Positions 5,733 through 21,766 of a stretch of DNA of 64,000 bases are shown here, piece by piece (positions within the stretch are counted from its first letter, which is position 1; each line of letters opens with the position of its first letter). Location: sequence record NC_005083.2; one strand, written 5' to 3'. Under the pieces are notes generated by a model. It did no database searches. It was not told where the DNA came from and was given only the letters and a program-made list of their open reading frames with translations. Position numbers and translations under genes: made by a program.

Positions 5733-6428
5733 ATGAAAAAGCTCGTACTTGTAGCTGCCGCTGCTGTAGCTCTTGTTGGATGTGGTGATTTGCCACGCCT
5801 GGAAACTAAGACAGACAAGAAATTCACCACGGTTAATGCAGTTGTGAACAAAAAAGAGCGTGAAATGATTAACTACTGGATGGCAGATGCTGACGGTAGT
5901 AACTATCTTTACAACAAGCTTTGGACTGCTCTTGCTACTCGTAACAAATACGGTTCTAATGCTGTGCGTCGTTCAGATGATGAAGTTCCGTTCTGTGATG
6001 TCATTGTAGCTCTTGCTAAATCTGAAGAAGATATTCGAAGCACGTACGAGCGTACATTTAATAATCAGTGGCGAACTCAATACGGCATTAGTCTTAATCA
6101 GCAATGTGGCTATACTCCACCAGAAACACTCGAAGAGCAAGCAGAGCGCGTTGAGAAACTTGAAATGCAAGCTGATTTGAAAAAGCGTGAGCAACAAGCA
6201 CAGAGTATTGAAACGCTTGATGACGTTGCCGACGCGACGACTGAGCTACTTGATCCGCATGAGTACGACTATCTGATCGAATCGGCACGCGAGTGTAATC
6301 GAGCCAAAACCAAATTGCTTGAACTAACGCAAGCAGGCAAACCTTTGACACAAGCTGACGGCTCAGATGCACGTAAGCTAATTATCGAATGCAAAATGCA
6401 TAAACTTGAAGTTGAATTGAATAAGTGA
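5733..6428 (+). CDS. lipoprotein, paralog of 18272..18991
   Basis: lipobox LVGC; EVPFCDVI, CNRAK, KLEVELNK shared with paralog. Confidence 0.75.
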   Translation: MKKLVLVAAAAVALVGCGDLPRLETKTDKKFTTVNAVVNKKEREMINYWMADADGSNYLYNKLWTALATRNKYGSNAVRRSDDEVPFCDVIVALAKSEEDIRSTYERTFNNQWRTQYGISLNQQCGYTPPETLEEQAERVEKLEMQADLKKREQQAQSIETLDDVADATTELLDPHEYDYLIESARECNRAKTKLLELTQAGKPLTQADGSDARKLIIECKMHKLEVELNK

Positions 6429-6434
6429 GAAAAC

Positions 6435-7217
6435 ATGTTGAGAACAAATATTGCGATTGAAGAACTGAAAATCCGAATGCATCCGTTCGATCAAGTTGCG
6501 AACGCAAACAACGACGATAGCTCAGTTCGCGACTGGCGCCAAATCCCTGACGTTGCTAATGACAATATCTTGAAGAACTCGGTTCTACCGTCGTGGGTAA
6601 TTCGAGAGTTTCACTGGCGTGATATTTCATTCAATCAACCATCAATGGGTGATCTGCCCGTTGAGTACAAAACAGAAGCAGGTGAAATCGGTAAATGTCA
6701 ATCGCATTATCTCGGTGAACTTGATGATTGCAAGTTCTGGCGCCCTGATATTGTATCTTTGAATGCTCAATTCATTGATTCAAAAGACGTTGATAAAGCA
6801 CTTGCAGAATTGCAAGCCGTTGATGTGTTTGACGCTTCACAAGGATTCGCTGACGGTCGACCTGACCCGGTTAGTCACAATGAACACGGTATAACCGATG
6901 ATGAGCTTGAAGCTGCAATCGTCGAAGCTGAAATGGCAGCGGCTGTGGATGCTTTAAAAGTTGAGTCGCAATCGTTGTTCGATCCAGATCATGTTTATTA
7001 CATGAATGAAAAGTATTATATTATCGGTGACGATCCGTTTGACGAAAATTACTGCTATGCGTTGAATGCTGCAAAATACCCACAGCGTATTGCAAAATCC
7101 CAACTCGTAACCGATGAGCAATACAAAGAAGCTGAAGTTTTGAAGAATCAGTTCCCGCAGATGTGGACTGCTCAAGATTACGCAAAGCTTGCTAAGTTCA
7201 TTCGCAGCAAAAAGTAG
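6435..7217 (+). CDS. hypothetical protein
   Basis: 260-aa ORF with RBS. Confidence 0.65.
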   Translation: MLRTNIAIEELKIRMHPFDQVANANNDDSSVRDWRQIPDVANDNILKNSVLPSWVIREFHWRDISFNQPSMGDLPVEYKTEAGEIGKCQSHYLGELDDCKFWRPDIVSLNAQFIDSKDVDKALAELQAVDVFDASQGFADGRPDPVSHNEHGITDDELEAAIVEAEMAAAVDALKVESQSLFDPDHVYYMNEKYYIIGDDPFDENYCYALNAAKYPQRIAKSQLVTDEQYKEAEVLKNQFPQMWTAQDYAKLAKFIRSKK

Positions 7218-7246
7218 TTTCCGATGCGGGTTGTTACGACATCCCG

Positions 7247-7254
7247 CATAAATA
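7247..7254 (+). promoter_or_regulatory. T4-type late promoter variant
   Basis: CATAAATA overlapping a hairpin with TACG loop (7224..7249). Confidence 0.65.
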
Positions 7255-7286
7255 GTTCTATATGGACTAACAAGGAAATTACGACA

Positions 7287-7817
7287 ATGCCAACTCCTAC
7301 AACAGGTGCGATTTCAATCGGTACCGTTCGTGATTATTTCAGTAGAACCGGCGCTGCTTCATTGTCTCAGTACTACAGAGGCGGCGGTATTGTTCCTGAT
7401 ATTACTGAAAATGCTCACGTACCAACTTCAGGCGCGATTAGCTTGAATGACTTGCGCGGTGTATATCGCTTGTCAACGTATACGACATCATTTACGACAA
7501 CATACAACACCACTGTATCAACATCGAATACGACTTCGCGTAGTACATCAAGAAGTACAACTAGAAGTACTGCATACAGTACAACTCGCTCGACTGCGTA
7601 TACTACTAGTTGGACAACTAGCCGAACTACGTCGGTGACTAAAGGTTCGTATTCGACATCATACACGACTTCTCGTGCTACATCACGTTCAACATCATAT
7701 AGCACGACACGTTCAACAGCTTATACGTCTACGTGGACAACATCATGGACAACCACGTACAACACAACAGTATCAACATCAAACACAACTTCGCGAAGCA
7801 CGCAAGTTGCAGTTTAA
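7287..7817 (+). CDS. Ser/Thr-rich repeat protein, probable virion surface protein
   Basis: aagga RBS; N-terminal PTTGAIS..SLSQYYRGG..PTSGAISLNDLRG module; about two-thirds S/T in last ~114 aa. Confidence 0.75.
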   Translation: MPTPTTGAISIGTVRDYFSRTGAASLSQYYRGGGIVPDITENAHVPTSGAISLNDLRGVYRLSTYTTSFTTTYNTTVSTSNTTSRSTSRSTTRSTAYSTTRSTAYTTSWTTSRTTSVTKGSYSTSYTTSRATSRSTSYSTTRSTAYTSTWTTSWTTTYNTTVSTSNTTSRSTQVAV

Positions 7818-7829
7818 CAGGGTTAAATT

Positions 7830-8048
7830 ATGAGCTACAATGAAGAACACGAGAACCGAATCAACGAGCTTGAGAACAAGGTTTCAAAGCTTGAGTCGAT
7901 AATTGAAAATCTGGTCGAGTCAATGACTTCGAACAGCGAAGCTATTATCGAACATATTGCATCACTTGAGACCGAGAGGGATTCGATTCTTGCATCATAT
8001 GATGACAAACTTAATGAGATCGTGACCAAATATGAACCCAAGCAATAG
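7830..8048 (+). CDS. small acidic coiled-coil protein
   Basis: heptad-like INELENKVSKLESII. Confidence 0.6.
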   Translation: MSYNEEHENRINELENKVSKLESIIENLVESMTSNSEAIIEHIASLETERDSILASYDDKLNEIVTKYEPKQ

Positions 8049-8886
8049 AGAAATGACTGGGTTCAATAACATTTCTCGCACCGGTAAGTTGAAATTACAA
8101 TCCGATGCAGACAACGTCCGTGCCATGTGTATGGACGTTGTTCGTTTATTGAACTCTAAAAATATACCATCTAACTTCGACATCAATCACAATGACGGTG
8201 GTAACATCGGCGTGCATGAATGGGTGTCACAAATCCGCTTCATTCACTTGAAATACATGAACGTTAATTTCCAAACGAAGATTTTCAAGCATGCCTATCA
8301 TAACACTGAAAACGTCGTTGACTATTTTGACACGTTCAAACATTCTGACAAATATCATCTATCAGCGAAGCCTAGATTTTTAGAATATGAAAACGTCGTA
8401 TTTCTATGTGGATCGAATGTACTTGAATTGGCAATTGACTTTGACAAGATTGATACGCTGGTCGAACATTATCCCGATTTAGTGATCAAACCACACCCGA
8501 TTACGACGCTGTATTACATCAATATGCTTAAAACTCGATATGGATCGAAGCGCGTGCTTTCTCAGAAGATCAGCGGTGTTGATGTTCTTAAATCTGCTAA
8601 ACGTGTTTGGCTACCTTCAACGTCTGAGTTCTGGTTTAGTGCCTTGAACTACGACAAAGAAATCGGGTTTATCTCTAAAGATGGTTTCTGTGGAACGTAC
8701 ACGTCAATCATCAACGCAGTATGGGAATTGCATGAAGAAACCGGTGATCCATTGAAAGATATTGTGAATAAAATTATCTCGTCACCTTACTCAGGTCTGT
8801 ATGGTAGTATGGCAGACTTTGAAGAGCATCACGAGAAATACTGTAATGTGATTCTAGAACTAGGGGGTAATTTCGATAATGTATGA
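8032..8886 (+). CDS. capsule-biosynthesis-like (KpsS/GT-B type) glycosyltransferase candidate
   Basis: LVIKPHP motif followed by SGVDVL..AKRV...STSE pattern. Confidence 0.45.
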   Translation: MNPSNREMTGFNNISRTGKLKLQSDADNVRAMCMDVVRLLNSKNIPSNFDINHNDGGNIGVHEWVSQIRFIHLKYMNVNFQTKIFKHAYHNTENVVDYFDTFKHSDKYHLSAKPRFLEYENVVFLCGSNVLELAIDFDKIDTLVEHYPDLVIKPHPITTLYYINMLKTRYGSKRVLSQKISGVDVLKSAKRVWLPSTSEFWFSALNYDKEIGFISKDGFCGTYTSIINAVWELHEETGDPLKDIVNKIISSPYSGLYGSMADFEEHHEKYCNVILELGGNFDNV

Positions 8887-9511
8887 TTATGTAATTCACA
8901 CTTCGATTAGTGACAAAAGTCAGCTAAACCAACTAGTGATGTTTGTCGGGTCTTTCATCGAGACGCACAAAAAAGGTCGCGTGGTCTGCGTGACTGATCT
9001 TGAACTTGATTTCACGATGCCTCGACTGTCATTTGAGAAAAAACTACCCGAAGAGTACGTTTTCATTTCAGTTGACAATCTATTTTTACAAAAAACATAC
9101 GGCGTTGTTAGCTACATTGACAGTGGTACTTGGCGATGTACTTGGCAAAAGAATGATCATGATGATTTCGTCATTAAAAAGCATGGCGAAAGAAGCGGGT
9201 TGATTCACCCTGATATTGCAATTGCAAATTACAATGTTTCGAGACATGGCGATCTCGACATGTATTACAACGCGCTTCGTTACATTGAGAGCGCAATCAC
9301 GATCAACTGCAAAGACTTTGCCCCTGCTGCTGAGAATAAAATCAACAGCTTTTACACGCTTGTATTTCCATGGGAGATTTATTTTCACGTTATGATCACT
9401 TACCAAGAGTATATTGATTCTGAATACGTTGAGCGAGTTCGCGCTAACTGTCATAAGTTCGCACACTCGGTTTATTACAGAAAATCAGGGTTGTTACGTG
9501 ATGGGTTATGA
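8879..9511 (+). CDS. hypothetical protein, possible GT-A glycosyltransferase
   Basis: N-terminal beta-alpha-beta ending VVCVTD; SYIDS resembles DxD region; weak. Confidence 0.35.
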   Translation: MYDYVIHTSISDKSQLNQLVMFVGSFIETHKKGRVVCVTDLELDFTMPRLSFEKKLPEEYVFISVDNLFLQKTYGVVSYIDSGTWRCTWQKNDHDDFVIKKHGERSGLIHPDIAIANYNVSRHGDLDMYYNALRYIESAITINCKDFAPAAENKINSFYTLVFPWEIYFHVMITYQEYIDSEYVERVRANCHKFAHSVYYRKSGLLRDGL

Positions 9512-10184
9512 TGAGATAATTTTAGTATCTGGTCTTGATAGTTTAGTTCTATATGAATTTCTTGAACGAAAGCCACACCCTGTTTACTTTAAATGGGGTT
9601 TTGCTATCGACGACATTGAAATGGCTGCTTTGCCTGAAGAAACAACTATCATAGAAATGCCAGAGATTTTGCATTTGAAACATGATCCGTATGAGTTCAA
9701 GACACCAAGAAATCCCGATTTAATTGGTCGGAATACGTTGATGTTTAACTCAGTTTTCCATGCATTCAGACCAAACGTAATTTATCGCGGGATGTTGAAA
9801 GGTGATGATTTCTATTACGACGCATCGCCTACGCATTCAGATGAAATCGCAGCTATGTGGTCGAAAATGCTGAATAAAGAGTGTCGAATTGAACAACCGT
9901 TCAAAGACAAAACGAAACGTGACATAATGCAAATGGCGGTCGAATACGGTATTGATGCGAATTCATTACAGCATTGTTACAATCGAGAACACAACTGCGG
10001 TCGATGTAGCAAGTGTGTGGATGCACATGTTAATTCTATGTACACCGACAACCCAGACATCATGTGGCTGAAACGAATAGTTAATGACTCGGGTATGGCA
10101 TCATTGGCTAATCACATGTTTGGTGTTGATACAGTTGACAGAATAAAGGAATTTCTAGATGAATTTGATCGAACAGACTGCTGA
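9501..10184 (+). CDS. QueC-like PP-loop ATPase
   Basis: SGLDS, GRN, TKRDI, CY..CGRCSKC. Confidence 0.8.
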   Translation: MGYDEIILVSGLDSLVLYEFLERKPHPVYFKWGFAIDDIEMAALPEETTIIEMPEILHLKHDPYEFKTPRNPDLIGRNTLMFNSVFHAFRPNVIYRGMLKGDDFYYDASPTHSDEIAAMWSKMLNKECRIEQPFKDKTKRDIMQMAVEYGIDANSLQHCYNREHNCGRCSKCVDAHVNSMYTDNPDIMWLKRIVNDSGMASLANHMFGVDTVDRIKEFLDEFDRTDC

Positions 10185-11052
10185 TAAATTCGAGCATAGT
10201 TACCGAGAAGACGTTCAAGGCGTACAGTGGTATTTCGGTAGTCGAACGCATGATTTTTATCTGTATGGAATAGACTCTCTTATTGATAAAGTCAAAGACT
10301 GTGATTTTATTGAAATCAAGCATGTTCAAGAGGGTACGCTGGTTAAACGAGGCGAAGCTGCGGTCACGGTTACGATTACAGATCATAGTCGTATCGCATA
10401 TGGGAACATGATTGAAACATTGTTGTACAATGAGTTGTGGTATTCGAGCACGGTCGGTACGATTTTACACCGTTGTCTTGATGTGTTGCATGAAAACGGC
10501 TATGACGCTCGTTCAGCATACCCTCAAATCGGACGGGCGAGTTCAACGCCAGAACAGTCAGCTAAAGCAAGGGATGTGTTCGCACGTATATTTTATCAAT
10601 CGTCGAATGAGAAAATACCCGTTGCGATGCACAGTGATATTTTAATCAACGGTGAGGAATATTGCATGGAACATTATAACGGCATCATGATTGATACTTT
10701 CGATAAGCAAGCTTGCATTGACTTGATCAACAAGAAAGACTTTCGAGGGACTGTGATGGTTGACTCTCAGCCAATAATTGAAACAATTGAGAGAGTTCTA
10801 GCTGAAACAAAATGCTTTGTTGCACAAGCTGAAAGTGTTACACTCGATGAGTGGATAGAGATAGTGCGACATTTTAAAGGCAATAAGCGAATTTTCTACG
10901 GGATTGGTAGCTTTGCATTTAGCAATATATCACGAGACACATTTGGTTTGATTTACAAAGTGTGTGCAGTTAAGAAAAACGACAACTGGATCGGAGTTTC
11001 AAAGATGACGACAGGTAAACAAACATCGGCTGGTTATAAGGTTATAGGTTAG
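10159..11052 (+). CDS. divergent, shortened NAMPT/NAPRT-like phosphoribosyltransferase
   Basis: EGTLV, ETLL..LWYSSTV.T, GRASS.E, IDTFD, RDTFG..YK motifs align with 14214..15707. Confidence 0.7.
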   Translation: MNLIEQTADKFEHSYREDVQGVQWYFGSRTHDFYLYGIDSLIDKVKDCDFIEIKHVQEGTLVKRGEAAVTVTITDHSRIAYGNMIETLLYNELWYSSTVGTILHRCLDVLHENGYDARSAYPQIGRASSTPEQSAKARDVFARIFYQSSNEKIPVAMHSDILINGEEYCMEHYNGIMIDTFDKQACIDLINKKDFRGTVMVDSQPIIETIERVLAETKCFVAQAESVTLDEWIEIVRHFKGNKRIFYGIGSFAFSNISRDTFGLIYKVCAVKKNDNWIGVSKMTTGKQTSAGYKVIG

Positions 11053-11054
11053 TT

Positions 11055-12044
11055 ATGAATTATTGTATAGCGCCGTTTACATCGCCGTCTATTACACCAG
11101 ACGGTTTTAAAATTTGCAGCATGCCAGGTCAGAAAGTATACCCTGATATTTCATTCTGGAATAGTGATGAAGTGATCAAGATTCGCGAACAGATTATCGC
11201 TGGTGAAATTCCTGAATCGTGCAAGGCATGTCGTAGTATGCGTGACGGGTTGATTGTGTCAAAAGAAAAACCAACTGATACTCATGTTGACTTGAATTTC
11301 AAAGCTCTTTACATTGCGCGGTCGAACAAGTGTGAATATGCTTGTGAAATGTGCAGTTCATCAATCTCACATAGCTATGACAAGAAATACAATGACGGTA
11401 AGTTGGGGATTATTGAGAATGACTTTGATGTTATTCCGTATCTGCACGAAACACAAGCCGTTGCTATTTCGGGCGGGAACCCTGTCATTGACAAAAAGGT
11501 TGCAGAGATTCTTGAGAATCTAGACCCTGACGTGGTAGAACGTTTCATTATTACTTCAAATGGGACAGTCTTTCCAGACAGATTCTTGAATGCAATTAAG
11601 AGATTGAAATGTGACGCGACTTTGATATTCTCTATGGACGGACCGAAAGAGTTTAATGAAGTGGTTCGATCTGGTGCGAAGCAAGAGAGAATCTATCGCA
11701 CCATTAATCGAGTTCTTGACGAGATTGAAGATTACCCAAACTTGCATGTGGCAATTGAGTATACTTTCACGAATAAGTCAATTCATCACTACGTTGATTT
11801 GTATGATGAAATGCTCTTCGAGATCAACCCGAAGCATTTGAAAAACAACTCAGTTAAAGTGATTGCGAATATGTGTACATACCCGCATCACCTTAGCGTT
11901 ACAACTGTTCCCAAAACCGTCATTGATGACATATTGTTCAATCAGTTGCCGTATTTGAGACAGCAACCCAGCCCATTGTCAAATCAATTCAAACTTGGCT
12001 ATGATAAGTTTTTGACTCAGTATCACAACAGCGTGATTATGTGA
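11055..12044 (+). CDS. radical SAM protein with N-terminal Cys (SPASM/twitch-like) segment
   Basis: CEYACEMC, SGGNP, TSNGT, SMDG. Confidence 0.85.
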   Translation: MNYCIAPFTSPSITPDGFKICSMPGQKVYPDISFWNSDEVIKIREQIIAGEIPESCKACRSMRDGLIVSKEKPTDTHVDLNFKALYIARSNKCEYACEMCSSSISHSYDKKYNDGKLGIIENDFDVIPYLHETQAVAISGGNPVIDKKVAEILENLDPDVVERFIITSNGTVFPDRFLNAIKRLKCDATLIFSMDGPKEFNEVVRSGAKQERIYRTINRVLDEIEDYPNLHVAIEYTFTNKSIHHYVDLYDEMLFEINPKHLKNNSVKVIANMCTYPHHLSVTTVPKTVIDDILFNQLPYLRQQPSPLSNQFKLGYDKFLTQYHNSVIM

Positions 12045-13161
12045 TCAGATCATACGCTTTGATATGTGAGTAAAACTCTGGACACGCAGACGATAAATTA
12101 GTTTTCGTCTTCGTGTCTATTCTTTTGTTAAGAACAAAGAATTCAGGGTTGAATTTACAAACACTGTGTTCCAGAGTAAGACATTCAGCAACGTGCTTAA
12201 ATGGTCTAGCCAAATCCTCACGCCCATCTTTTAAATACGCTTCTTCTTTCACTTTGAATCTTGATAATAGCTGGTCTCGAAATGCAACTGGAATGTTGTA
12301 AATTGAGTATGGATTATCAGGCTCACCGACGACATGCACAGACAAACGTACACGTTTACCATCATAAAGCGAATCAAAATCTGAAACCAATGTTTCAAGA
12401 TGTTCAAGAGTCACGTTTGACACGGTCGCAGTGATAACTACATCAAAGTGTTGCTTGATGACTTCAATGTTTGATTTGACTTTTTTGATGTCTGCAAACA
12501 ATCGAATATAATCTTGGTATTCTCGTAGACCGTCGATTGATACGAACACCGTTGATGCATTAGCTTCTTTAAGCGATTTGATGAGATCTGAGCCATCGGC
12601 TAACACTAGTGATGAGCCATTCGTGAAAATATTCACTGCGGCTTTAATGTCGCCTACGTTGCGAAGAACTTCAGGAGCATTTGACGAGCGGGTAATTTCA
12701 CCGCCTAGAATTGTCAATGACGAAAGTCCTTTGCTGATTGTGTTGATTGTCGTACTCAAATCATTGAATCGAGTACTTGAATCTTCTTCATTGAACAATC
12801 TAGCCTTCAAGTCTGATAATTTGCTGTAGCAGTAACGACAAGCTTGATTACATTCATTACTAGGGAATACTTGTAGCCAGCGAACTGAATCAGCGGGCAT
12901 AATAGGTGAAACTTCAGAATCGTGTTCTGTTAGACGCTGTGGGTCATTATCAGTAATGCACATTTGACATGCCTTTGACAGCTTGCTCATGTCGTGGTTT
13001 AGCATTGCTTCACGATAAGCGACAAGCTTTTCATCATTCCAAGCGTCTGCTAGTGTTTTTTCATCAGTAAACCATTCATAATCAGCCGAACAGCAAAACG
13101 TAATTTGATTGTTTGCTCGTGTGATGAACTGCTTGAACGGCATATAACATAGTGGTTTCAT
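12037..13161 (-). CDS. radical SAM protein
   Basis: CNQACRYC, LGGE, FTNGS, SIDG; N-terminal C..CC..C..C. Confidence 0.85.
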   Translation of the reverse strand: MKPLCYMPFKQFITRANNQITFCCSADYEWFTDEKTLADAWNDEKLVAYREAMLNHDMSKLSKACQMCITDNDPQRLTEHDSEVSPIMPADSVRWLQVFPSNECNQACRYCYSKLSDLKARLFNEEDSSTRFNDLSTTINTISKGLSSLTILGGEITRSSNAPEVLRNVGDIKAAVNIFTNGSSLVLADGSDLIKSLKEANASTVFVSIDGLREYQDYIRLFADIKKVKSNIEVIKQHFDVVITATVSNVTLEHLETLVSDFDSLYDGKRVRLSVHVVGEPDNPYSIYNIPVAFRDQLLSRFKVKEEAYLKDGREDLARPFKHVAECLTLEHSVCKFNPEFFVLNKRIDTKTKTNLSSACPEFYSHIKAYDLIT

Positions 13162-13171
13162 GTTTCTGTCC

Positions 13172-13744
13172 TTAGTTAAAAATGCTACTTGTATATATAG
13201 CAGTCTTCAGGGCATTGAAATGATCGTCAACTCTATTCACGTGTATGCATTCAATGTCAAATCTTTCTTGGATTTCTCGGATGTTGTCTAGCGAGTCGTC
13301 GATGAAGTATTTCACCTCATGCAGTTCACACAGCTTCTCGACATACTTTGCCTTCGAGTCGAAGTACTCAATCGAAATCACCTCACTTATCATCCCTGGG
13401 AATAACGCATTTAGATTATACACGCGATTTGACCATGAAGTTCTACTCATGCTGAACTTGGTTAGTGCAATGATGTTATATCGGTCTGAGAGTTCGCGTA
13501 ACGCATCGTAAGCGTCTTCATATGCGGGTATGTACTTTGCACACTCATGTTCATTGTATGCGCCTATAAGCTTTCCTAGTTGCATGTCACTCACGTTAAT
13601 AAATAAAGAGCGTGCATCGGTATCAGTATTTGAACCGTTGATATTCAAATTATCAAGCATGCCTAATTGCATCATGAAGAATGGCAAGTTGGCTTTCCAG
13701 TTAAGCAAAACCCCGTCTACATCTATGATGATCGTCTTTTTCAT
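13172..13744 (-). CDS. HAD-superfamily phosphatase (T4 gp30.2-like)
   Basis: DVDGVL and FIDD motifs. Confidence 0.75.
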   Translation of the reverse strand: MKKTIIIDVDGVLLNWKANLPFFMMQLGMLDNLNINGSNTDTDARSLFINVSDMQLGKLIGAYNEHECAKYIPAYEDAYDALRELSDRYNIIALTKFSMSRTSWSNRVYNLNALFPGMISEVISIEYFDSKAKYVEKLCELHEVKYFIDDSLDNIREIQERFDIECIHVNRVDDHFNALKTAIYTSSIFN

Positions 13745-14213: not shown

Positions 14214-15707
14214 ATGCTAAATCTTAATCAAAATATCGCAATCGCAACTGACAGCTACAAAGTTTCACACTGGTCTCAATTCCCTCGTGGTCTAGAGTAC
14301 AGCCAATATTACGTCGAAAGCCGGGGTGGTAAGTTCGACAAAATTATGGTCGATGGTATGGCATACATGTGTCGTATTCTCGAAAAAGGTGTTTCGATGA
14401 ACGATGTCAAGCGTGCGAAACGTCTGTTCAAAAAGCACTTCGGTTCTGAAGTCTTCAATGACAAGGGTTGGGACATCATCGTTAACGAACTGAAAGGCAA
14501 ACTGCCTATTAAGATTCGTGCGGTCAAAGAAGGTACTGTAGTACCAGTTAAACACCCTATCTTGACGATTGAGAACACAGATCCGCGTTTTGGTTGGCTG
14601 CCTGGCTATCTTGAAACGTTCATCTTGCGTGCTCTTTGGTACCCGACAACTGTAGCAACGATCTCGTTCGAAGTGAAGAAAATCATTCGCCAATTCATGA
14701 AGAAGACGGTTGATGATGAACGCATTGCAGAACAAGAGCCGTTCAAACTTCACGACTTTGGTTCTCGTGGTGTATCAAGTGGCGAATCTGCGGCTATCGG
14801 CGGCTCTGCTCACTTGAAAAACTTCTTGGGTACTGACACTGTAGAAGCACTTGTTGCAGTTGAAGAACTTTACGCTGAAGATGTTGAAGACTTCATTGCA
14901 GGATTCTCAATCCCTGCACGTGAACACTCAACAACTACAATCTACAAAGAAGCTGGTGAAGACCAAGCATTCTTGAACTCTATTGAGCAATGGGGTGCTG
15001 CATTATACGCTTGTGTAATGGACAGCTACGACTACGAAGCAGCAATGAATCGTGTCTCGACTGGTCGCTTCAAAGAGCTAATCATCAGCAAAGGCGGTAC
15101 GTTTGTTGCTCGTCCTGACTCTGGTGTGCCTGTAGATGTAGTAATGAAAGGTCTTGAGATTCTTGGTAAAAACGTTGGTTATACAATCAACAGCAAGGGT
15201 TACAAAGTATTGCACCCTAGCTACCGTATCATTCAAGGTGACGGCGTGAACATCGAAGAAATTCGTCGAATCTTGTCTTACATGGAAAGTAAAGGCTGGT
15301 CGGCAGAAAATATTGCATTCGGTATGGGTGGCGGGTTGCTTCAACAACTTGACCGTGATACTCAACGCTTTGCAATGAAAATGTCAGCGGCAATCATCAA
15401 CGGCGAATACGTTAGCGTGTTCAAAATGCCGAAGACTGATCCGACAAAAGCATCAAAAGCAGGTTTCTTGGATTTGATTGCAGTTGATGCAGACAATCCG
15501 AACCCAGCGGCTCGTGGTTACGTGACGTTCTCTTCTGAAGATTACGACAATCGCGTACACCCGAAAAGCGTGATGCAGACAATCTTCGAAGACGGTGTAA
15601 CAGTTGCCGACTTCTCACTAGAAGAAGCGCGTAAACTGTCTGACGTACAAGCTGATTTCCTGAACGAAGGTGAATGGAAAATCGCGAAAAAGATTCAAAC
15701 TGCGTAA
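14214..15707 (+). CDS. nadV: nicotinamide phosphoribosyltransferase
   Basis: TDSYKVSH, LHDFGSRG, AREHS, RPDSG, IQGDG, FGMGGGLLQ..RDT. Confidence 0.95.
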   Translation: MLNLNQNIAIATDSYKVSHWSQFPRGLEYSQYYVESRGGKFDKIMVDGMAYMCRILEKGVSMNDVKRAKRLFKKHFGSEVFNDKGWDIIVNELKGKLPIKIRAVKEGTVVPVKHPILTIENTDPRFGWLPGYLETFILRALWYPTTVATISFEVKKIIRQFMKKTVDDERIAEQEPFKLHDFGSRGVSSGESAAIGGSAHLKNFLGTDTVEALVAVEELYAEDVEDFIAGFSIPAREHSTTTIYKEAGEDQAFLNSIEQWGAALYACVMDSYDYEAAMNRVSTGRFKELIISKGGTFVARPDSGVPVDVVMKGLEILGKNVGYTINSKGYKVLHPSYRIIQGDGVNIEEIRRILSYMESKGWSAENIAFGMGGGLLQQLDRDTQRFAMKMSAAIINGEYVSVFKMPKTDPTKASKAGFLDLIAVDADNPNPAARGYVTFSSEDYDNRVHPKSVMQTIFEDGVTVADFSLEEARKLSDVQADFLNEGEWKIAKKIQTA

Positions 15708-19418: not shown

Positions 19419-19444
19419 AAAAGGGAGCACTAAGCTCCCTTTCT
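19418..19444. terminator. bidirectional terminator
   Basis: A run-gggagc-acta-agctccc-T run between convergent genes. Confidence 0.75.
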
Positions 19445-20496
19445 CATTTCACCATTTTGATTTGAATCTGATTGTCCATGTAAGCCATTTTCTTTTCAAA
19501 TTCAACATCATATTCTGGTCGATGTTCGTATTCGACTGAAAGCATTTGCTTCAGACAACGGTACAATTCCGACTTGTAATACCCTTCTTTCATTCCCTTC
19601 ATCTGTTCATATTGCTTTTTCATAGCAGCTTTGATTATCTTCGGGTCCATGAATTTGATTGACATTTCTCGCGGTGCTTTTACTGTGCCAAAGTCAACAA
19701 ACACCTGAGCCTTTTCAGCTACTTGAATGAAGTCATAAATCGTGTCATAACTCATTCGACTTAGCGTGTGGTGCATACAAACATGTTTGCTATGTTCTTT
19801 TAGCAACGGTACATTTGCAAGCATCAAGTCGTGGTCGATGTTCTGACGAATGTATTCGTTGCGCTCTTTTCCGCCGTCACATGAAATTGTAAACACTAGA
19901 CGATGTTTGTACTTTTTACATATGGCTAGAATCTTCTTCGCAAGTGGCGTATGCAACACAGTACCATTTGTCAGAATGTAAACTTCCGCATTTGTTTCTT
20001 CCATGACTTCAGTCAGAACTTCGACTGTTCTCTTGTCCATGAACGGTTCGCCGCCGTATAGCACAACAGTTTCAACACCCTTCGGGATACTGAAATCGAG
20101 TTGTGTGTAATCGTAATGGTCGTCAATGTCATACAAGTCCATGTATGTTTTGCTATTCTTGCCATAGCACATTCGACACGCTAGGTTACATTTGTTTGAC
20201 ATCAATATTTGAATTGTTCTAGGATGCTCTTCGAGTGCTTCATATTCGAAGTACTTCTGATCAGACAATTCGCCATAACTCATACATTCTTTGCAGTATT
20301 CTGGTAAAGTGTCATACTCAAACATTTTGGCACGATGTTCATTGATGATGTCACTGTGCCACCAGTCTTCAACGTTCGGGAATGGTTCACTTAGCTGAGA
20401 ACAGCAAATGTGATACCCATCAGGTTTTGCGTCACGTGTATTAAAGGGAGAGCCACAAAGTGGTCTCTTCCCGTCTTTAAATCCGAATTTATCCAT
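19444..20496 (-). CDS. radical SAM protein with N-terminal Cys segment
   Basis: CNLACRMC, YGGEPF, LTNGT, SCDG. Confidence 0.85.
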   Translation of the reverse strand: MDKFGFKDGKRPLCGSPFNTRDAKPDGYHICCSQLSEPFPNVEDWWHSDIINEHRAKMFEYDTLPEYCKECMSYGELSDQKYFEYEALEEHPRTIQILMSNKCNLACRMCYGKNSKTYMDLYDIDDHYDYTQLDFSIPKGVETVVLYGGEPFMDKRTVEVLTEVMEETNAEVYILTNGTVLHTPLAKKILAICKKYKHRLVFTISCDGGKERNEYIRQNIDHDLMLANVPLLKEHSKHVCMHHTLSRMSYDTIYDFIQVAEKAQVFVDFGTVKAPREMSIKFMDPKIIKAAMKKQYEQMKGMKEGYYKSELYRCLKQMLSVEYEHRPEYDVEFEKKMAYMDNQIQIKMVK

Positions 20497-20789
20497 TAAT
20501 CTAGCTCATCAAGAAGTGATTGAAATTCCTCGTCGCGTTCAGCGTCGATTGTACCAGTCATCAACTCTGTTAGAGTCTTCAACGACTTGATCTCTGGTGG
20601 TTGAGGGCGTAGATCTTCGAGAATGTGAATGATTGACTCGGCTGGGAGATCGTGATTTACGATCTCATCTGGCAGGTGGTGTTTGTAAACGCAGTCGTCG
20701 CCCCAATCAATAACTACTGCATGTTCCCATTTGTCGATTTCTAGTATTTTAAAATTTGGTTTCATCATAAGCCCCAGAGTTCTTTCCAA
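20496..20789 (-). CDS. hypothetical protein
   Basis: coupled between glycosyltransferase and radical SAM genes. Confidence 0.55.
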   Translation of the reverse strand: MERTLGLMMKPNFKILEIDKWEHAVVIDWGDDCVYKHHLPDEIVNHDLPAESIIHILEDLRPQPPEIKSLKTLTELMTGTIDAERDEEFQSLLDELD

Positions 20790-21766
20790 TGTGTTTTAGC
20801 ATCTTGTCGATACTTCTCAATGTCAAATTTTTGATATTTCTGTTCGATTGCATCATCAATGACGCGAATCAACGTATCATTGTTTATATCAGCACGAATC
20901 ACTGGGAAAATAAAATCCCTTGTGTAAGGTGCGTCATGCTGAACAATACAAGGTATGTACTGACATGCTTCTAATAACGCATATGGCATAATCTCGATTC
21001 TAGACATATGAAGCAAAACTTTACTTTTCATCATATGTGCCATGACTCGCTCACGCCGCTGACAAGTTTCGACTATACAATCAACACCATTCGGGATTCT
21101 TATTGATTCGGTTGTGAATAGACGAATTTTAAGACCGCTGTATGCAAGCGCGTTTAGCATTTCGGGTATCTGCTTACGTTTGTATGCACCTGACACGATA
21201 ATCACGTCAGACTCTTCAGCAGCGTCAATATCAGCTTGTGATATGGACGGAAGCTCAAAAGGTTCAAATGCAGTCACATGTTTGCCACCGATTACTTCTC
21301 GACCCCATTGTGCAATCCCGTTCGATTGAGCAATGTTAGTGACTAATGACGTTGACATCATGTGTCGCCATTGAGGTAAGTTGTAAATTTGATGAATGTC
21401 CATGTATTCGCGATATGAATCTGGTACTATCAAGTCACCGAAATGATGTTGGTTGTAACAACGGCGCTTCGCTTCGATACATGCGCGGAGTGCTTCATAT
21501 GAATGCGTATAGATAATCGCTTCGCTATCAATCGCGTTGATAACCATTGCGTTTGCCTTGTAGTCTTTATAAGACCGTTTCGTTAAAATGAAGTCACACC
21601 CGAAATCCCATTTACTCACGTGCGGACACGATTCGTCTCCGAGTACAATAACTTTGACATCACAGTTTAGTGATTGCATTAAACGAACGTGATCTTGAAT
21701 GAATGTGTAAATACCGCCGCCAATTCCCAACATAAAGTCAGTTACTACGTAGCGAACTTTTTTCAT
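20765..21766 (-). CDS. GT-B glycosyltransferase (GT4-like)
   Basis: GIGGG near N-terminus; SRIE..P...LEA nucleotide-sugar motif. Confidence 0.75.
   Translation of the reverse strand: MKKVRYVVTDFMLGIGGGIYTFIQDHVRLMQSLNCDVKVIVLGDESCPHVSKWDFGCDFILTKRSYKDYKANAMVINAIDSEAIIYTHSYEALRACIEAKRRCYNQHHFGDLIVPDSYREYMDIHQIYNLPQWRHMMSTSLVTNIAQSNGIAQWGREVIGGKHVTAFEPFELPSISQADIDAAEESDVIIVSGAYKRKQIPEMLNALAYSGLKIRLFTTESIRIPNGVDCIVETCQRRERVMAHMMKSKVLLHMSRIEIMPYALLEACQYIPCIVQHDAPYTRDFIFPVIRADINNDTLIRVIDDAIEQKYQKFDIEKYRQDAKTHWKELWGL

Follow-up and report, generated by a model that had tools for sequence, protein, structure and literature searches.

The eight-gene cassette KVP40.0254–0261 of Vibrio phage KVP40 (NC_005083.2) may make and decorate a small, Thr-rich, fiber-like virion protein, a tentative reading to which, with the second enzyme set included, we assign a probability of about 0.45. 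A functional link between its S/T repeat protein and its KPHP-motif glycosyltransferase (GT)-like enzyme is well supported by comparison of gene neighborhoods, and the cassette is best taken as three separable units: A (0254–0256), B (0258–0259), and C (0260–0261). Part of this layout recurs beside tail-fiber genes in unrelated phages, which points to an unstudied form of phage surface-protein modification.

Gene Layout and Upstream Region

The cassette was analyzed within a 64,000-nucleotide stretch of the KVP40 genome, here called the window, which is 100% identical to NC_005083.2; its coordinates are converted to record coordinates by adding 124000. The open reading frame (ORF) list bears out the gene layout of the initial annotation: seven tightly packed plus-strand genes (7287–7817, 7830–8048, 8032–8886, 8879–9511, 9498–10184, 10159–11052, and 11055–12044), with junctions that include overlaps of 17, 8, 14, and 26 nt and one 2-nt gap, and a second radical SAM gene on the minus strand (12037–13161) that converges on them and overlaps the last by 8 nt. 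The family calls made at that stage hold at the fold or superfamily level, with QueC, NAPRTase, and Radical_SAM Pfam matches above cutoff and GT-B assigned through a fold model; the functional interpretation is supported in part, for the S/T–GT link, and not for a single eight-gene pathway or for SPASM-type enzymes. In KVP40, the cassette lies outside the structural module, surrounded by small, probably early genes and with nadV nearby, a location that counts against a role in the virion.

The S/T gene begins at 7287, as first proposed, and the RefSeq start at 7224 is wrong because the stretch upstream lies in another frame in QD01, VS1, and VS2. A plus-strand stem-loop read directly from the sequence follows gene 0253 at 7224–7254, with 7224–7230 paired with 7243–7249. 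Overlapping it at 7247–7254 is CATAAATA, which has one mismatch to the T4 late-promoter consensus TATAAATA and is also present in QD01 and VS1; the 6E35 and F86 clades have CTAAATAT there. The window contains two exact matches to the consensus, not above chance expectation, and the promoter-like CATAAATA may be taken as a weak hint of late transcription.

A Thr-Rich Repeat Protein Encoded Next to a GT-B-Like Enzyme

KVP40.0254 (7287–7817, plus strand) encodes a 176-aa protein with a conserved N-terminal domain of ~60–62 aa, bearing the double motif PTSGxIS...YYRGGGxVP...PTSGxIS..xG, followed by a repeat of Thr/Ser with Arg/Tyr/Trp. The repeat has a period of 4: the observed/expected ratio of Thr-Thr pairs is 1.6–2.2 at lags 4, 8, and 12 and 0.2–0.6 at lags 2, 6, and 10. 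That the ORF is a real gene follows from its being kept, with in-frame indels, across clades that are only 44–51% identical. A profile HMM of the N-terminal domain retrieves proteins of Stenotrophomonas phage DLP_6, Xanthomonas phage RTH11, Ralstonia phage YL1, and the metagenomic T4-like phage L018 with E-values of 1e-13 to 1e-32; in DLP_6 and RTH11 the domain starts small proteins encoded directly 3′ of giant tail-fiber genes, and in L018 it heads a T-rich protein of 1032 aa. We regard 0254 as probably a fiber protein. Against this, virion proteomics of the relative 6E35.1a did not detect the cassette enzymes, and the S/T protein was undetectable there because its ORF is absent from the annotation used.

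KVP40.0255 (7830–8048, plus strand), a gene overlapping the start of the GT-like gene, encodes a 72-aa acidic coiled-coil protein that gave only coiled-coil noise against Pfam and NCBIfam and that, judged only by size and composition, is probably a fiber-assembly helper comparable to T4 gp57A. KVP40.0256 (8032–8886, plus strand) encodes a 284-aa GT-B-like enzyme with invariant DKYxL, GxN, KPHP, and SE motifs, and its conserved N terminus backs the long start at 8032. Pfam matches are sub-threshold only (GT52, 19.5 bits against a cutoff of 26.1), and a set of 5.8 billion proteins yields just 24 clusters of the family, which carries no Pfam assignment. An AlphaFold2 model (pLDDT 80, pTM 0.80) supports a GT-B fold; its best Foldseek matches are the β-Kdo transferases KpsC, WbbB, and KrkA, with LpxB, SdgB, and WaaC also found (probability 0.9–0.99, TM 0.3–0.43). 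At an E of about 1e-3 and a TM of at most 0.43 the predicted fold match is statistically marginal, and the N-terminal domain is smaller than is usual in GT-B enzymes.

GT-like loci outside the Vibrio clades come from two Caulobacter phages and five metagenomic phage lineages (L015, L017, L018-20, L021-22, and L023), and in them a T/S/Y/R-rich protein is encoded directly upstream of the GT-like gene or is parted from it only by a small coiled-coil gene. Lullwater (gp40-42), Cr30 (gp253-255), and L015 encode a T-rich protein with a GT-like gene, as does L017, where the T-rich ORF is uncalled; the GT-like gene is preceded by a 1032-aa protein with a 0254-type N-terminal domain in L018-20 and by a 1425-aa protein, 39% Thr, in L021-22; and L023 is included by matching gene order alone. 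Four of the metagenomic lineages have a gene at the 0255-equivalent position, encoding a coiled-coil protein of 58–76 aa in L017, L018, and L021 and a 54-aa protein in L023 that is assigned by position. The initial annotation linked the S/T protein to the KPHP GT-like enzyme, and this link is well supported, as the two are adjacent at every other locus examined and are acquired and lost jointly among Vibrio phages. Tail-fiber genes usually adjoin the non-Vibrio loci, and giant fiber genes, Phage_tail_APC, and gp13/14/15 lie in the vicinity, a tail-fiber or neck setting; this position could be coincidence, because accessory genes often accumulate in tail-fiber regions.

The nearest folds to 0256 are lipopolysaccharide (LPS) and capsule enzymes (KpsC, WbbB, LpxB, and WaaC), which would suit remodeling of the host envelope during infection, at the LPS core, Kdo region, or O-antigen, to exclude superinfection or to keep progeny from adhering to debris; the T-rich protein would then be an unrelated neighbor or a secreted envelope protein. 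At the same locus, K566 and K567 encode a lipoprotein, two GT8 enzymes, a GT4-like protein, PagP, and four radical SAM enzymes, and host-recognition clusters of marine T4-like phages hold radical SAM cassettes together with LPS-type glycosyltransferases (PMC7029224). However, envelope remodeling leaves unexplained both why every examined lineage has a T-rich protein ahead of the GT-like gene (in L023 by gene order alone) and why the domain of that protein occurs directly after tail-fiber genes, and no signal peptide or membrane segment was seen when the cassette protein sequences were read by eye. We consider it unlikely.

QueC-Like and Phosphoribosyltransferase-Like Enzymes

KVP40.0257 (8879–9511, plus strand; 210 aa) is found only in the Vibrio phage cassette, where it is 32–39% identical to its counterparts in other clades; it has no match in Pfam, NCBIfam, or PADLOC, and its AlphaFold2 model (pLDDT 51) makes a fold search meaningless. 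KVP40.0258 (9498–10184, plus strand) is a QueC-superfamily PP-loop enzyme nearer to Cap9 than to canonical QueC. It scores 36.6 bits against QueC PF06508 (cutoff 22), 48.8 bits over its full length against the PADLOC CBASS QueC model, and 28.3 bits against TIGR00364, far under the cutoff of 150.3; its sole PDB match is Cap9 (9nto_B, E 1e-5). By the published motif definitions of the QueC family (PMC13082051), it retains SGxDS, GR(N/D), YxD, K140, and the zinc motif C-x6-C-x2-C-x2-C, and has WGF..D..E in place of the canonical deazaguanine-binding YxQxHxxE.

KVP40.0259 (10159–11052, plus strand; 297 aa) is a truncated NAMPT-like type II phosphoribosyltransferase (PRTase) that scores 28.5 bits against NAPRTase PF04095 (cutoff 20.8) and aligns with KVP40 NadV at an hhalign probability of 96%. 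It keeps the catalytic His (H158 of a VAxH motif, aligned to EHS) and GIGS..RDT, its DSxP aligns to RPDSG with loss of the Arg, and its QxES aligns to QGDG. Credible relatives number only four (P0031, P0032, P0034, and P0035) among 1.84 billion representatives. Outside Vibrio phages, the QueC-like/PRTase-like pair is found in only two unrelated phage contigs, L029 and L030, adjoining tail-fiber genes. In L030, the pair is accompanied by a small radical SAM gene, and the preceding protein begins MALRTSG, resembling the anchor family; its score against the anchor-domain HMM is 3 bits, which is not significant.

Both contigs have the pair without a GT-like gene or T-rich protein, as would be expected of a composite island in which only 0254–0256 serve the fiber protein, 0258 and 0259 carry out a small-molecule route of their own, and the radical SAM enzymes do something else. 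For example, 0259 might convert nicotinate and PRPP to NaMN and 0258 might amidate the carboxylate with ATP to give NMN, a route that would feed phage NatV/NadV NAD+ salvage and help against NAD+-depleting defenses. Consistent with this, 0259 is a NAMPT/NAPRT homolog with the catalytic His and ribose-phosphate motifs, PP-loop enzymes of the same superfamily such as LarE act on nicotinic-acid mononucleotide carboxylates (PMC13082051), KVP40 has nadV 1 kb downstream (14214–15707) and D479 has natV about 6 kb upstream, and a short-form homolog is solitary in the bacterial-looking contig L028. However, the L029 and L030 pairs sit inside late tail-gene operons with no NMN adenylyltransferase nearby, phage NadV already handles nicotinamide, and the 0259 family is extremely rare compared with common phage NAD salvage (a NAMPT-like sequence matches 118 phage records). 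Moreover, 0258 scores closest to the protein ligase Cap9 rather than to an amidating synthetase, and 0259 lacks the Arg of RPDSG as well as the nicotinamide-specificity segment of NAMPT. This is a serious rival, although we lean against it.

The QueC Pfam score above cutoff, and the names queC and queE given to these genes by automatic annotation, could alternatively indicate a second 7-deazaguanine-type route to DNA or RNA base modification, in which 0258 would play the part of QueC and a radical SAM enzyme that of QueE, and the PRTase would produce a deazapurine nucleotide. Deazapurine PRTases are known chemistry in the toyocamycin and tubercidin pathways, to which the PRTase step is likened here. 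KVP40 makes CDG and preQ0 elsewhere (PMC8056088; PMC12028318), but it does so with canonical FolE, QueD, QueE, QueC, and DpdA encoded elsewhere in its genome (PMC8056088), and the cassette has neither DpdA nor a TGT. In addition, 0258 lies far under the QueC equivalog cutoff, 0259 is a type II (pyridine) rather than a purine-type type I PRTase, and LC/MS of the relative 6E35.1a reported dPreQ1 as the sole DNA modification, at 15% of dG (PMC12028318). Because the preQ0/DpdA set is separate and complete and the QueC paralog lacks YxQxHxxE, the DNA target that had been offered as an alternative is unlikely, and we give base modification scarcely any weight.

Two Radical SAM Enzymes

KVP40.0260 (11055–12044, plus strand) is a radical SAM enzyme with a CX3CX2C motif and an N-terminal four-Cys auxiliary-cluster domain, and KVP40.0261 (12037–13161, minus strand), converging on it, is a second enzyme of the same type. 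They score 37.8 and 45.4 bits, respectively, against Radical_SAM PF04055 (cutoff 29.5) and 118.6 and 127.9 bits against the N-terminal-twitch model NF033640, both below its cutoff of 170. With 51–55% identity between clades, 0260 is the best-conserved enzyme of the cassette, and it is weakly similar to viperin and MoaA; 0261 is poorly kept, at about 25% identity, and matches the PADLOC pVip model with an E of 3e-12. Their initial description as SPASM-type peptide maturases was wrong by every test run: four Cys lie N-terminal to CX3CX2C in both proteins, and no SPASM domain was detected in either with Pfam or NCBIfam.

A repeat protein beside two radical SAM enzymes with auxiliary clusters nevertheless resembles a RiPP-like system, in which these enzymes would cross-link or epimerize the aromatic/Arg-Thr repeats of 0254 and its N-terminal domain would be a recognition leader; there are weak matches to many peptide maturases, and Tyr, Trp, or Arg occupies a fixed repeat position. 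Such a role is very improbable: all non-Vibrio T-rich loci lack radical SAM genes, 0261 is barely kept between clades, no SPASM domain was detected, viperin and MoaA, both of which have nucleotide substrates, give the best specific similarities, and the 0254 N-terminal domain also occurs on proteins with unrelated C termini and no radical SAM neighbor.

Distribution of the Units and a Proposed Role

In a search of 50,697 phage records, the S/T N-terminal domain and the GT-like, QueC-like, and PRTase-like proteins each matched the identical 35 Vibrio records, and none of the four match lists includes nt-1, CZ01, K566, or K567. As regards the single eight-gene pathway of the initial annotation, units A and B co-occur in 35 Vibrio records, but outside Vibrio phages each occurs separately, the T-rich/GT unit being without QueC-like, PRTase-like, and radical SAM genes in all non-Vibrio loci. 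With the radical SAM genes placed differently in the D479 clade, upstream of the S/T gene, a single pathway is not demonstrated, and adjacency is weak evidence for one because the genus is syntenic and the island is replaced en bloc.

Under our preferred reading, a decorated fiber-like protein, the 0254 N-terminal domain probably docks the protein on the tail-fiber or baseplate apparatus, leaving the period-4 Thr-rich repeat as the exposed portion, and 0255 probably helps assembly. With the HP motif typical of CMP-ulosonic-acid transferases, 0256 most likely O-glycosylates Thr/Ser of the repeat, and its donor could be a host-made nucleotide sugar of the Gram-negative cell such as CMP-Kdo or a CMP-nonulosonic acid. 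In Schizotequatrovirus phages, a second enzyme set would have been added: 0259 would form the N-ribosyl-5′-phosphate of a carboxylated heterocycle, nicotinate-like or 7-carboxy-7-deazaguanine-like, 0258 would adenylate the heterocycle carboxylate and couple it to an amine on the fiber protein or its glycan, and tailoring, of either donor or product, would fall to 0257 and the two radical SAM enzymes. Cap9, the closest characterized relative of 0258, sets a precedent for this ligase chemistry, since it uses ATP to couple a heterocyclic carboxylate to an amine of a protein (PMC13082051).

Comparison with Known Systems

The radical SAM enzymes resemble the NF033640 family, the best-scoring model for both although below its curated cutoff, in the four-Cys domain before CX3CX2C; we know of no member with a known reaction. 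0259 shares its catalytic core, phospho-His, and ribose-phosphate motifs with NAMPT/NAPRT, phage NadV (NARP2), and Namat (NARP1), but it is 297 aa long, against about 470–520 aa for NAMPT/NAPRT, with the NAMPT_N domain and inserts of about 80 residues missing, and it is paired with a QueC-like gene instead of an NMN adenylyltransferase or Adps. Cap9 (type IV CBASS) and QatC, ligases of the QueC family, modify a protein N terminus with 7-carboxy-7-deazaguanine ("deazaguanylation"). Cap9 is nearest to 0258 in sequence, and its PP-loop, RN and YxD motifs, and zinc motif are kept; as with Cap9 and QatC, 0258 is encoded beside a candidate protein substrate with a conserved extreme N terminus. However, 0258 belongs to a phage rather than a defense system, with a type II PRTase as partner and no CD-NTase, QatB, or TGT-like Cap10, and its carboxylate substrate may not be a deazaguanine because the YxQ retained in Cap9 is replaced.

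KpsC, WbbB, and KrkA (GT107/GT99) and other HP-motif CMP-ulosonic-acid transferases are GT-B-like with His-Pro in the C-terminal Rossmann domain, as is 0256, which shows 10–17% identity to its structural matches at a TM-score of ≤0.43 and has no Pfam/CAZy-type family match above threshold; the known enzymes of this group use glycolipid rather than protein acceptors. A protein acceptor has a parallel in SdgA/SdgB, where a GT-B modifies many sites of a short-period Ser-Asp repeat in staphylococcal adhesins, but SdgB, itself among the fold matches, is a bacterial UDP-GlcNAc GT4-type enzyme of ~500 residues, and the repeat chemistry differs. Mycobacteriophage capsids and tail tubes are reportedly glycosylated (Freeman et al. 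2023, [quoted passage not shown]). The KVP40 glycan is putative, and the system differs from the mycobacteriophage one in its Gram-negative hosts, its unclassified HP-motif GT-B, and a predicted target that is neither capsid nor tail tube but a dedicated repeat protein bearing a putative docking domain; as in phage virion O-glycosylation, a phage glycosyltransferase gene adjoins that of its structural target, here a predicted one, with an exposed Ser/Thr-rich segment.

Gene Organization of the Cassette

The 5.9-kb stretch carrying the cassette matches the T4-like Schizotequatrovirus Vibrio phage KVP40 (NC_005083.2) with 100% identity, and window positions are those of the record minus 124000. 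The ORF list bears out the arrangement described initially, seven close-packed plus-strand genes and one gene converging on them, all overlapping or nearly touching. These are KVP40.0254 (7287–7817, +), encoding the S/T repeat protein; KVP40.0255 (7830–8048, +), a small coiled-coil protein; KVP40.0256 (8032–8886, +), the glycosyltransferase (GT)-like protein; KVP40.0257 (8879–9511, +), a protein of the Vibrio cassette; KVP40.0258 (9498–10184, +), QueC-like; KVP40.0259 (10159–11052, +), PRTase-like; and two radical SAM genes, KVP40.0260 (11055–12044, +) and the converging KVP40.0261 (12037–13161, −). The start of 0254 at 7287 was upheld, as codons further upstream are out of frame in phages QD01, VS1, and VS2; the RefSeq start of this gene is too early (window 7224–7286). 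The RefSeq start of 0256 is too late (window 8032–8124), and we place it at 8032 because the N terminus encoded from there is kept across clades. In Vibrio phage genomes of the OZ19xxxx series, the S/T ORF is unannotated and spurious short ORFs are called at its site (6234–6767, 6263–6775, and 6182–6739 in relatives' loci L005, L006, and L007).

The family assignments of the initial annotation stood at superfamily level for QueC, NAPRTase, and Radical_SAM, which exceed their Pfam cut-offs. The GT-like gene gives only a sub-threshold GT52 match, and no SPASM domain is found. The automatic labels "queC/queE" and "cell wall mannoprotein" are artefacts of superfamily similarity or composition.

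On the downstream side, the cassette is flanked by a T4 30.2-like HAD-fold gene (window 13172–13744, −) and nadV (14214–15707, +). In every clade, the 30.2-like gene (52% identity) adjoins the cassette, and in D479 it abuts the PRTase-like gene. On the upstream side, a stem-loop after gene 0253 (window 7224–7254) overlaps CATAAATA, which is one mismatch off the T4 late-promoter consensus, and a related CTAAATAT lies upstream of the S/T gene in clades 6E35 and F86; from these promoter-like sequences the S/T gene may be transcribed late. Exact copies of the T4 late-promoter consensus show no enrichment within the window, and scans for sigma-70 promoter-like and terminator-like signals gave background levels only.

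A Thr-Rich Protein and a GT-Like Enzyme Recur Together in Unrelated Phages

The proposed link between the S/T protein and the GT-like enzyme received the strongest backing of any part of the initial annotation: gene neighborhoods show that the two co-occur repeatedly and independently in phage families that are unrelated. When 5.8 billion proteins were searched with a profile, only 24 clusters of the GT-like family were recovered, none with a Pfam assignment, and homologs are present in Caulobacter phages. In all contexts that were fetched, a Thr/Ser/Tyr/Arg-rich protein is encoded directly upstream of the GT-like gene or with just a small coiled-coil gene between them, by gene order only in the case of L023, a partial metagenomic contig with a 159-aa gene and a 54-aa gene, known by size alone, before the GT-like gene. 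The T7-like Caulobacter phage Lullwater encodes tail fiber gp40, T/S/Y-rich gp41, and GT-like gp42 in succession, and the T4-like Caulobacter phage Cr30 encodes a homologous fiber (gp253), T/Y-rich gp254, and GT-like gp255, followed by neck genes. Among metagenomic T4-like loci, L015 contains a 2173-aa fiber, a T/Y-rich 137-aa protein, the GT-like gene, a tail assembly chaperone, and gp13/14/15, and L018–L020 contain a 1032-aa T-rich protein, a 75-aa coiled coil, the GT-like gene, other GTs, a sulfotransferase, and gp13–15; the 1032-aa protein consists of a 0254-type N-terminal domain and then ~970 residues of T-rich repeats. On a 222-kb metagenomic contig (L017), an uncalled T/S/R-rich ORF with the N-terminal motif precedes a 76-aa coiled coil and the GT-like gene, and in L021–L022, also metagenomic, a 1425-aa protein with 39% Thr precedes a 58-aa coiled coil and the GT-like gene. 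The Thr-rich proteins range from 116 to >1400 residues with up to 39% Thr, and the small coiled-coil protein accompanies the pair in KVP40 and four other lineages. A six-frame compositional scan of the 64-kb window flagged essentially nothing besides the S/T protein. With high credence, gene order and composition point to the T-rich protein and GT-like enzyme being a functional unit tied to the tail-fiber apparatus.

The S/T Repeat Protein Carries a Conserved N-Terminal Domain

The cassette is kept in Schizotequatrovirus clades 6E35, F86, and D479 at a mere 32 to 55% amino acid identity, and in these genomes the S/T ORF occupies the same position, unannotated. Because its indels preserve the reading frame, selection acts on the plus-strand frame. 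An alignment of 0254 from five clades shows a near-invariant N-terminal domain of ~62 residues followed by the repeat, in which Thr occurs at every fourth residue and a set position in between holds Arg, Tyr, or Trp, with Arg returning at intervals of 4 to 8 residues; observed/expected Thr-Thr ratios are 1.6 to 2.2 at lags 4, 8, and 12 and 0.2 to 0.6 at lags 2, 6, and 10. The N-terminal domain, which we call the anchor domain, comprises two copies of a (P)TSGxIS…xG motif around YYRGGGxVP.

The anchor domain was detected by tblastn in 14 non-Vibrio phage records (E 1e-9 to 7e-2), and a profile HMM scored members in loci L009, L010, L011, L017, and L018 at E 1e-13 to 1e-32, with the double motif at the extreme N terminus of the member proteins. 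In Stenotrophomonas phage DLP_6 and Xanthomonas phage RTH11, the domain heads small proteins encoded directly after giant tail-fiber genes, and in Ralstonia phage YL1 it heads a 232-aa Gly-rich protein. The C termini of the DLP_6, RTH11, and YL1 proteins are unrelated, being Ig-like or Gly-rich. A conserved docking module joined to a variable exposed part, as these sequences are read here, is the architecture of a virion-attached protein, and attachment to the fiber or baseplate is predicted on the basis of gene position. RTH11 encodes two anchor-domain paralogs with near-identical Ig-like C termini (locus L011, 6001–6471 and 7020–7502), ~550 bp apart, and the pair comes after a tail-fiber gene of >6.6 kb.

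The GT-Like Enzyme Probably Adopts a GT-B Fold

An AlphaFold2 model of 0256 built from 25 family members has a pLDDT of 80 and a pTM of 0.80. Its top 25 Foldseek matches are nearly all GT-B, with probabilities of 0.9 to 0.99 but E values of ~1e-3 and TM scores of 0.25 to 0.43, and because of these E values and TM scores of at most 0.43, despite the high probabilities, the GT-B fold is graded as probable from the model. The best PDB matches are the retaining β-Kdo transferases KpsC, WbbB, and KrkA, then LpxB, WaaC, and SdgB, the last of which glycosylates Ser-Asp repeats of staphylococcal adhesins. Residues K153, H155, and P156 (a K-P-H-P motif) are invariant in 25 to 28 family members, as is an S-E pair; a His-Pro motif is characteristic of transferases using CMP-activated ulosonic acids. 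No curated GT family threshold was reached by 0256 (PF07922, GT52, 19.5 bits vs. a cut-off of 26.1), NCBIfam gave zero matches, and none of the 24 homologs has a precomputed Pfam assignment. The sugar donor could be a compound common to all Gram-negative hosts, for example CMP-Kdo, and with a host-made donor the minimal triad of 0254 to 0256 could work in phages without adjacent sugar-biosynthesis genes.

The QueC-Like and PRTase-Like Proteins Form a Rare Pair

The complete preQ0/DpdA system of KVP40 is found at other loci, KVP40.0120–0124 and 0284 (PMC8056088; PMC12028318). As true queC, queD, queE, and dpdA are thereby accounted for outside the cassette, 0258 is a paralog; of all the purposes considered for the cassette, DNA modification receives the least credence from us. 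The canonical QueC motifs are SGGxDS, YxQxHxxE, VPxRN, YPDC, and a Cys4 zinc site (PMC13082051). In 0258, we find a SG(L/I)DS PP-loop variant, GR(N/D), and Yx(D/E)(A/S), with only the Lys and the Cys4 zinc site fully intact, and the substrate-facing YxQxHxxE is swapped for WGF..D..E. The protein fails the QueC equivalog model (TIGR00364, 28.3 bits vs. a cut-off of 150.3), and its motifs, this score, and the location of queD and queE outside the cassette set it apart from canonical QueC. Its sole PDB match is Cap9, the type IV CBASS ligase (9nto_B, E 1e-5), and the PADLOC model for Cap9-type QueC (PDLC00911) matches over the full length with 48.8 bits (E 2e-13). As regards deazaguanylation ligases of the Cap9/QatC type, 0258 is closest in sequence to Cap9, and its ATP and zinc sites are intact; the partners of those systems, a CD-NTase with Cap10 or QatA/B/D, are absent from the KVP40 cassette and from two unrelated phage contigs that encode the pair (L029 and L030).

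The neighboring 0259 is a NAMPT homolog shortened to 297 residues (PF04095, 28.5 bits vs. a cut-off of 20.8). Aligned to KVP40 NadV by hhalign (probability 96%), its invariant H158 matches the His of EHS. The catalytic His is retained, along with the DS of RPDSG and the GxGx…RDT ribose-phosphate motif. The full NAMPT/NAPRT architecture is ~470 to 500 aa long with a NAMPT_N domain that 0259 does not have. Its PRPP-binding residue set is incomplete, with another residue in place of the Arg of RPDSG and QxES in place of QGDG, and long segments and several inserts are deleted. Model NF006629 scored 63.5 bits, below its cut-off of 405. In phage phi-pp2, the PRTase-like gene (JN849462.1, 133480–134371) aligns as two separate pieces, a sign of a possible frameshift or sequencing error.

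Among 1.84 billion representatives searched exhaustively with HMMER, there were only four credible relatives of the short or intermediate form of 0259: P0031 (296 aa), P0032 (303 aa, alone on a bacterial-looking contig, L028), P0034 (397 aa, L029), and P0035 (386 aa, L030–L032), the last two on unrelated phage contigs. In L029 and L030, a QueC-like gene of the 0258 subfamily lies directly against the PRTase-like gene or overlaps it, and the pair adjoins tail-fiber genes. The order in L029 is a 675-aa fiber, an uncalled Gly-rich ORF, QueC-like, PRTase-like, a 559-aa protein, and tail tip; that in L030 is a 1211-aa fiber with a Peptidase_S74 domain, a small protein starting MALRTSG, QueC-like, a 288-aa radical SAM protein, PRTase-like, and a second QueC-like protein. 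The pair is thus a unit in its own right. Three lineages have it beside fiber genes, and in one further case a radical SAM gene again accompanies it. Other searches were less productive: a word-based homolog search with 0258 alone returned two near-identical proteins only, and one with its alignment returned Schizotequatrovirus-like contigs only; pattern scans with the PRTase-like alignment retrieved KVP40 itself in IMG/VR and zero in JGI metagenomes; and among isolated phages, nothing is closer to the L029 PRTase-like protein than the Vibrio short forms.

Two small ORFs lie between fiber and QueC-like genes. The uncalled L029 ORF (8476–9294, 272 aa) overlaps the QueC-like start by 4 nt, and its likeness to the Ralstonia YL1 protein was dismissed as compositional only. 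The L030 protein (7130–7561), between the S74 tail-fiber gene and the first QueC-like gene, starts with the N-terminal heptad of the anchor-domain family, a regular expression that matched nothing else in six frames of 14 loci; the protein fell below significance with the anchor-domain HMM, and the heptad is a hint only of kinship.

The main alternative for 0258 and 0259 is an independent nicotinate-to-NMN route for NAD+ salvage. Two points make it plausible: LarE, of the same superfamily as 0258, performs carboxylate activation on a nicotinic-acid mononucleotide derivative, and both nadV and natV are nearby. The pair is extremely rare, however, and in L029 and L030 lies inside tail operons, and we regard this route as unlikely, while giving it serious consideration.

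Radical SAM Genes, 0257, and Neighboring Islands

Both 0260 and 0261 have the CX3CX2C core, visible in their translations (PF04055, 37.8 and 45.4 bits). The suggestion that they are SPASM-type peptide maturases did not survive: neither matches PF13186, and every maturase model gives a score well short of its cut-off. A RiPP-like role for the cassette, in which peptides are cross-linked, has very little weight in our assessment. In both proteins, four Cys stand N-terminal to CX3CX2C, placing the auxiliary cluster at the N terminus, and as the best-scoring model for both is the N-terminal-twitch NF033640 (118.6 and 127.9 bits, below the cut-off of 170), they are probably distant relatives of that family, judging from these scores. 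For 0257, an AlphaFold2 model from four sequences reached a pLDDT of 51 and the fold search gave noise only; a profile comparison with the 246-aa protein after the GT-like gene in L018 found no relationship.

Clade-specific extra genes of ~225 aa with no family match lie inside the cassette (L005, 9148–9819; L006, 5548–6225). The one in 6E35 and F86 separates the QueC-like gene from the PRTase-like gene, and that of D479 stands between the radical SAM genes and the S/T gene. The 223-aa gene of 6E35 and F86 is related to neither the 225-aa D479 gene nor KVP40.0270. A second radical SAM and GT pair is found in KVP40.0272–0274 (window 19444–21766, −), whose counterparts belong to the core gene set of the genus. 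Here, 0272 adds a third radical SAM protein with the N-terminal Cys arrangement (PADLOC pVip model, E 4e-13), 0273 has 97 aa, and 0274 (333 aa) is 22% identical to the GT4-like protein of the K566 form of an island that occupies the cassette locus in Vibrio phages K566 (L012, 4042–16828) and K567. That island encodes a lipobox lipoprotein, four radical SAM proteins (one with an N-terminal SPASM-like match), two GT8, a GT4-like protein, and PagP. Cassettes of radical SAM and glycosyltransferase genes appear to be exchanged at the cassette locus. Remodeling of the envelope by the KVP40 cassette is a further alternative, and one that we judge improbable.

Do All Genes Belong to One Pathway?

The S/T N-terminal domain and the GT-like, QueC-like, and PRTase-like genes were each found in 35 Vibrio records with identical accessions among 50,697 phage records, and phages nt-1, CZ01, K566, and K567 are missing from all four gene lists. 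Phages of the D479 type have both radical SAM genes relocated upstream of the S/T gene, still within the block. Against a single pathway, the genomes sharing the genes are syntenic relatives, K566 and K567 had the whole block replaced at once by another island (PMC12028318), and the units are separable outside the genus. The initial interpretation is therefore supported in part: credence is high for the link of S/T protein and GT-like enzyme and only moderate for 0257 to 0261 acting on the same target.

A Proposed Pathway and Its Implications

The literature search found no functional study of the cassette genes. The region has been called an "anti-defense island" by annotation alone, and the virion proteomics of the same study could not see the S/T ORF, which was absent from the annotation (PMC12028318).

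Our overall reading, to which we assign a probability of roughly 0.45, is that 0254 is a decorated fiber-like virion protein served by a helper, an O-glycosylating enzyme, and a second modification set. In this scheme, 0254 would be a small fiber-like protein of the virion, and 0255 might aid its assembly, by analogy in size and composition only with small coiled-coil fiber chaperones such as T4 gp57A. The Thr repeat of 0254 would be O-glycosylated by 0256. In Schizotequatroviruses, 0259 would additionally make the riboside phosphate of a carboxylated heterocycle, which 0258 would join through its carboxylate to an amine on protein or glycan, and the radical SAM enzymes and 0257 would tailor the group.

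Virion glycosylation by phage-encoded enzymes is known in mycobacteriophages. The T-rich protein family, the 0256 enzyme family, and the QueC-like/NAMPT-like pair are all uncharacterized. If the reading is right, an unrecognized class of Thr-rich, probably glycosylated fiber proteins, each with its own dedicated GT from an unclassified family, is present in many T4-like and T7-like phages of marine and fresh waters, and the coat could alter adsorption, host range, sticking to mucus or particles, and recognition by grazers or immune systems. Current annotation misses these proteins, the ORF being uncalled in ~20 deposited genomes. The QueC-like/NAMPT-like pair would either carry QueC-family protein-ligase chemistry from bacterial defense into phage structural biology or represent a third phage route to NAD+ precursors, and both outcomes are directly testable in KVP40, a long-standing laboratory phage.

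The boldest form of the proposal, which we offer as a long shot, is that Cap9-like 0258 and truncated NAMPT-like 0259 put a protein- or glycan-linked heterocycle riboside phosphate, tailored by the radical SAM enzymes, on the adjacent fiber-associated protein. Were it true, phages would have, in a nucleotide-like group on their own fiber proteins, an equivalent of the "deazaguanylation" discovered recently in bacterial defense, set atop a mucin-like O-glycosylated Thr repeat.
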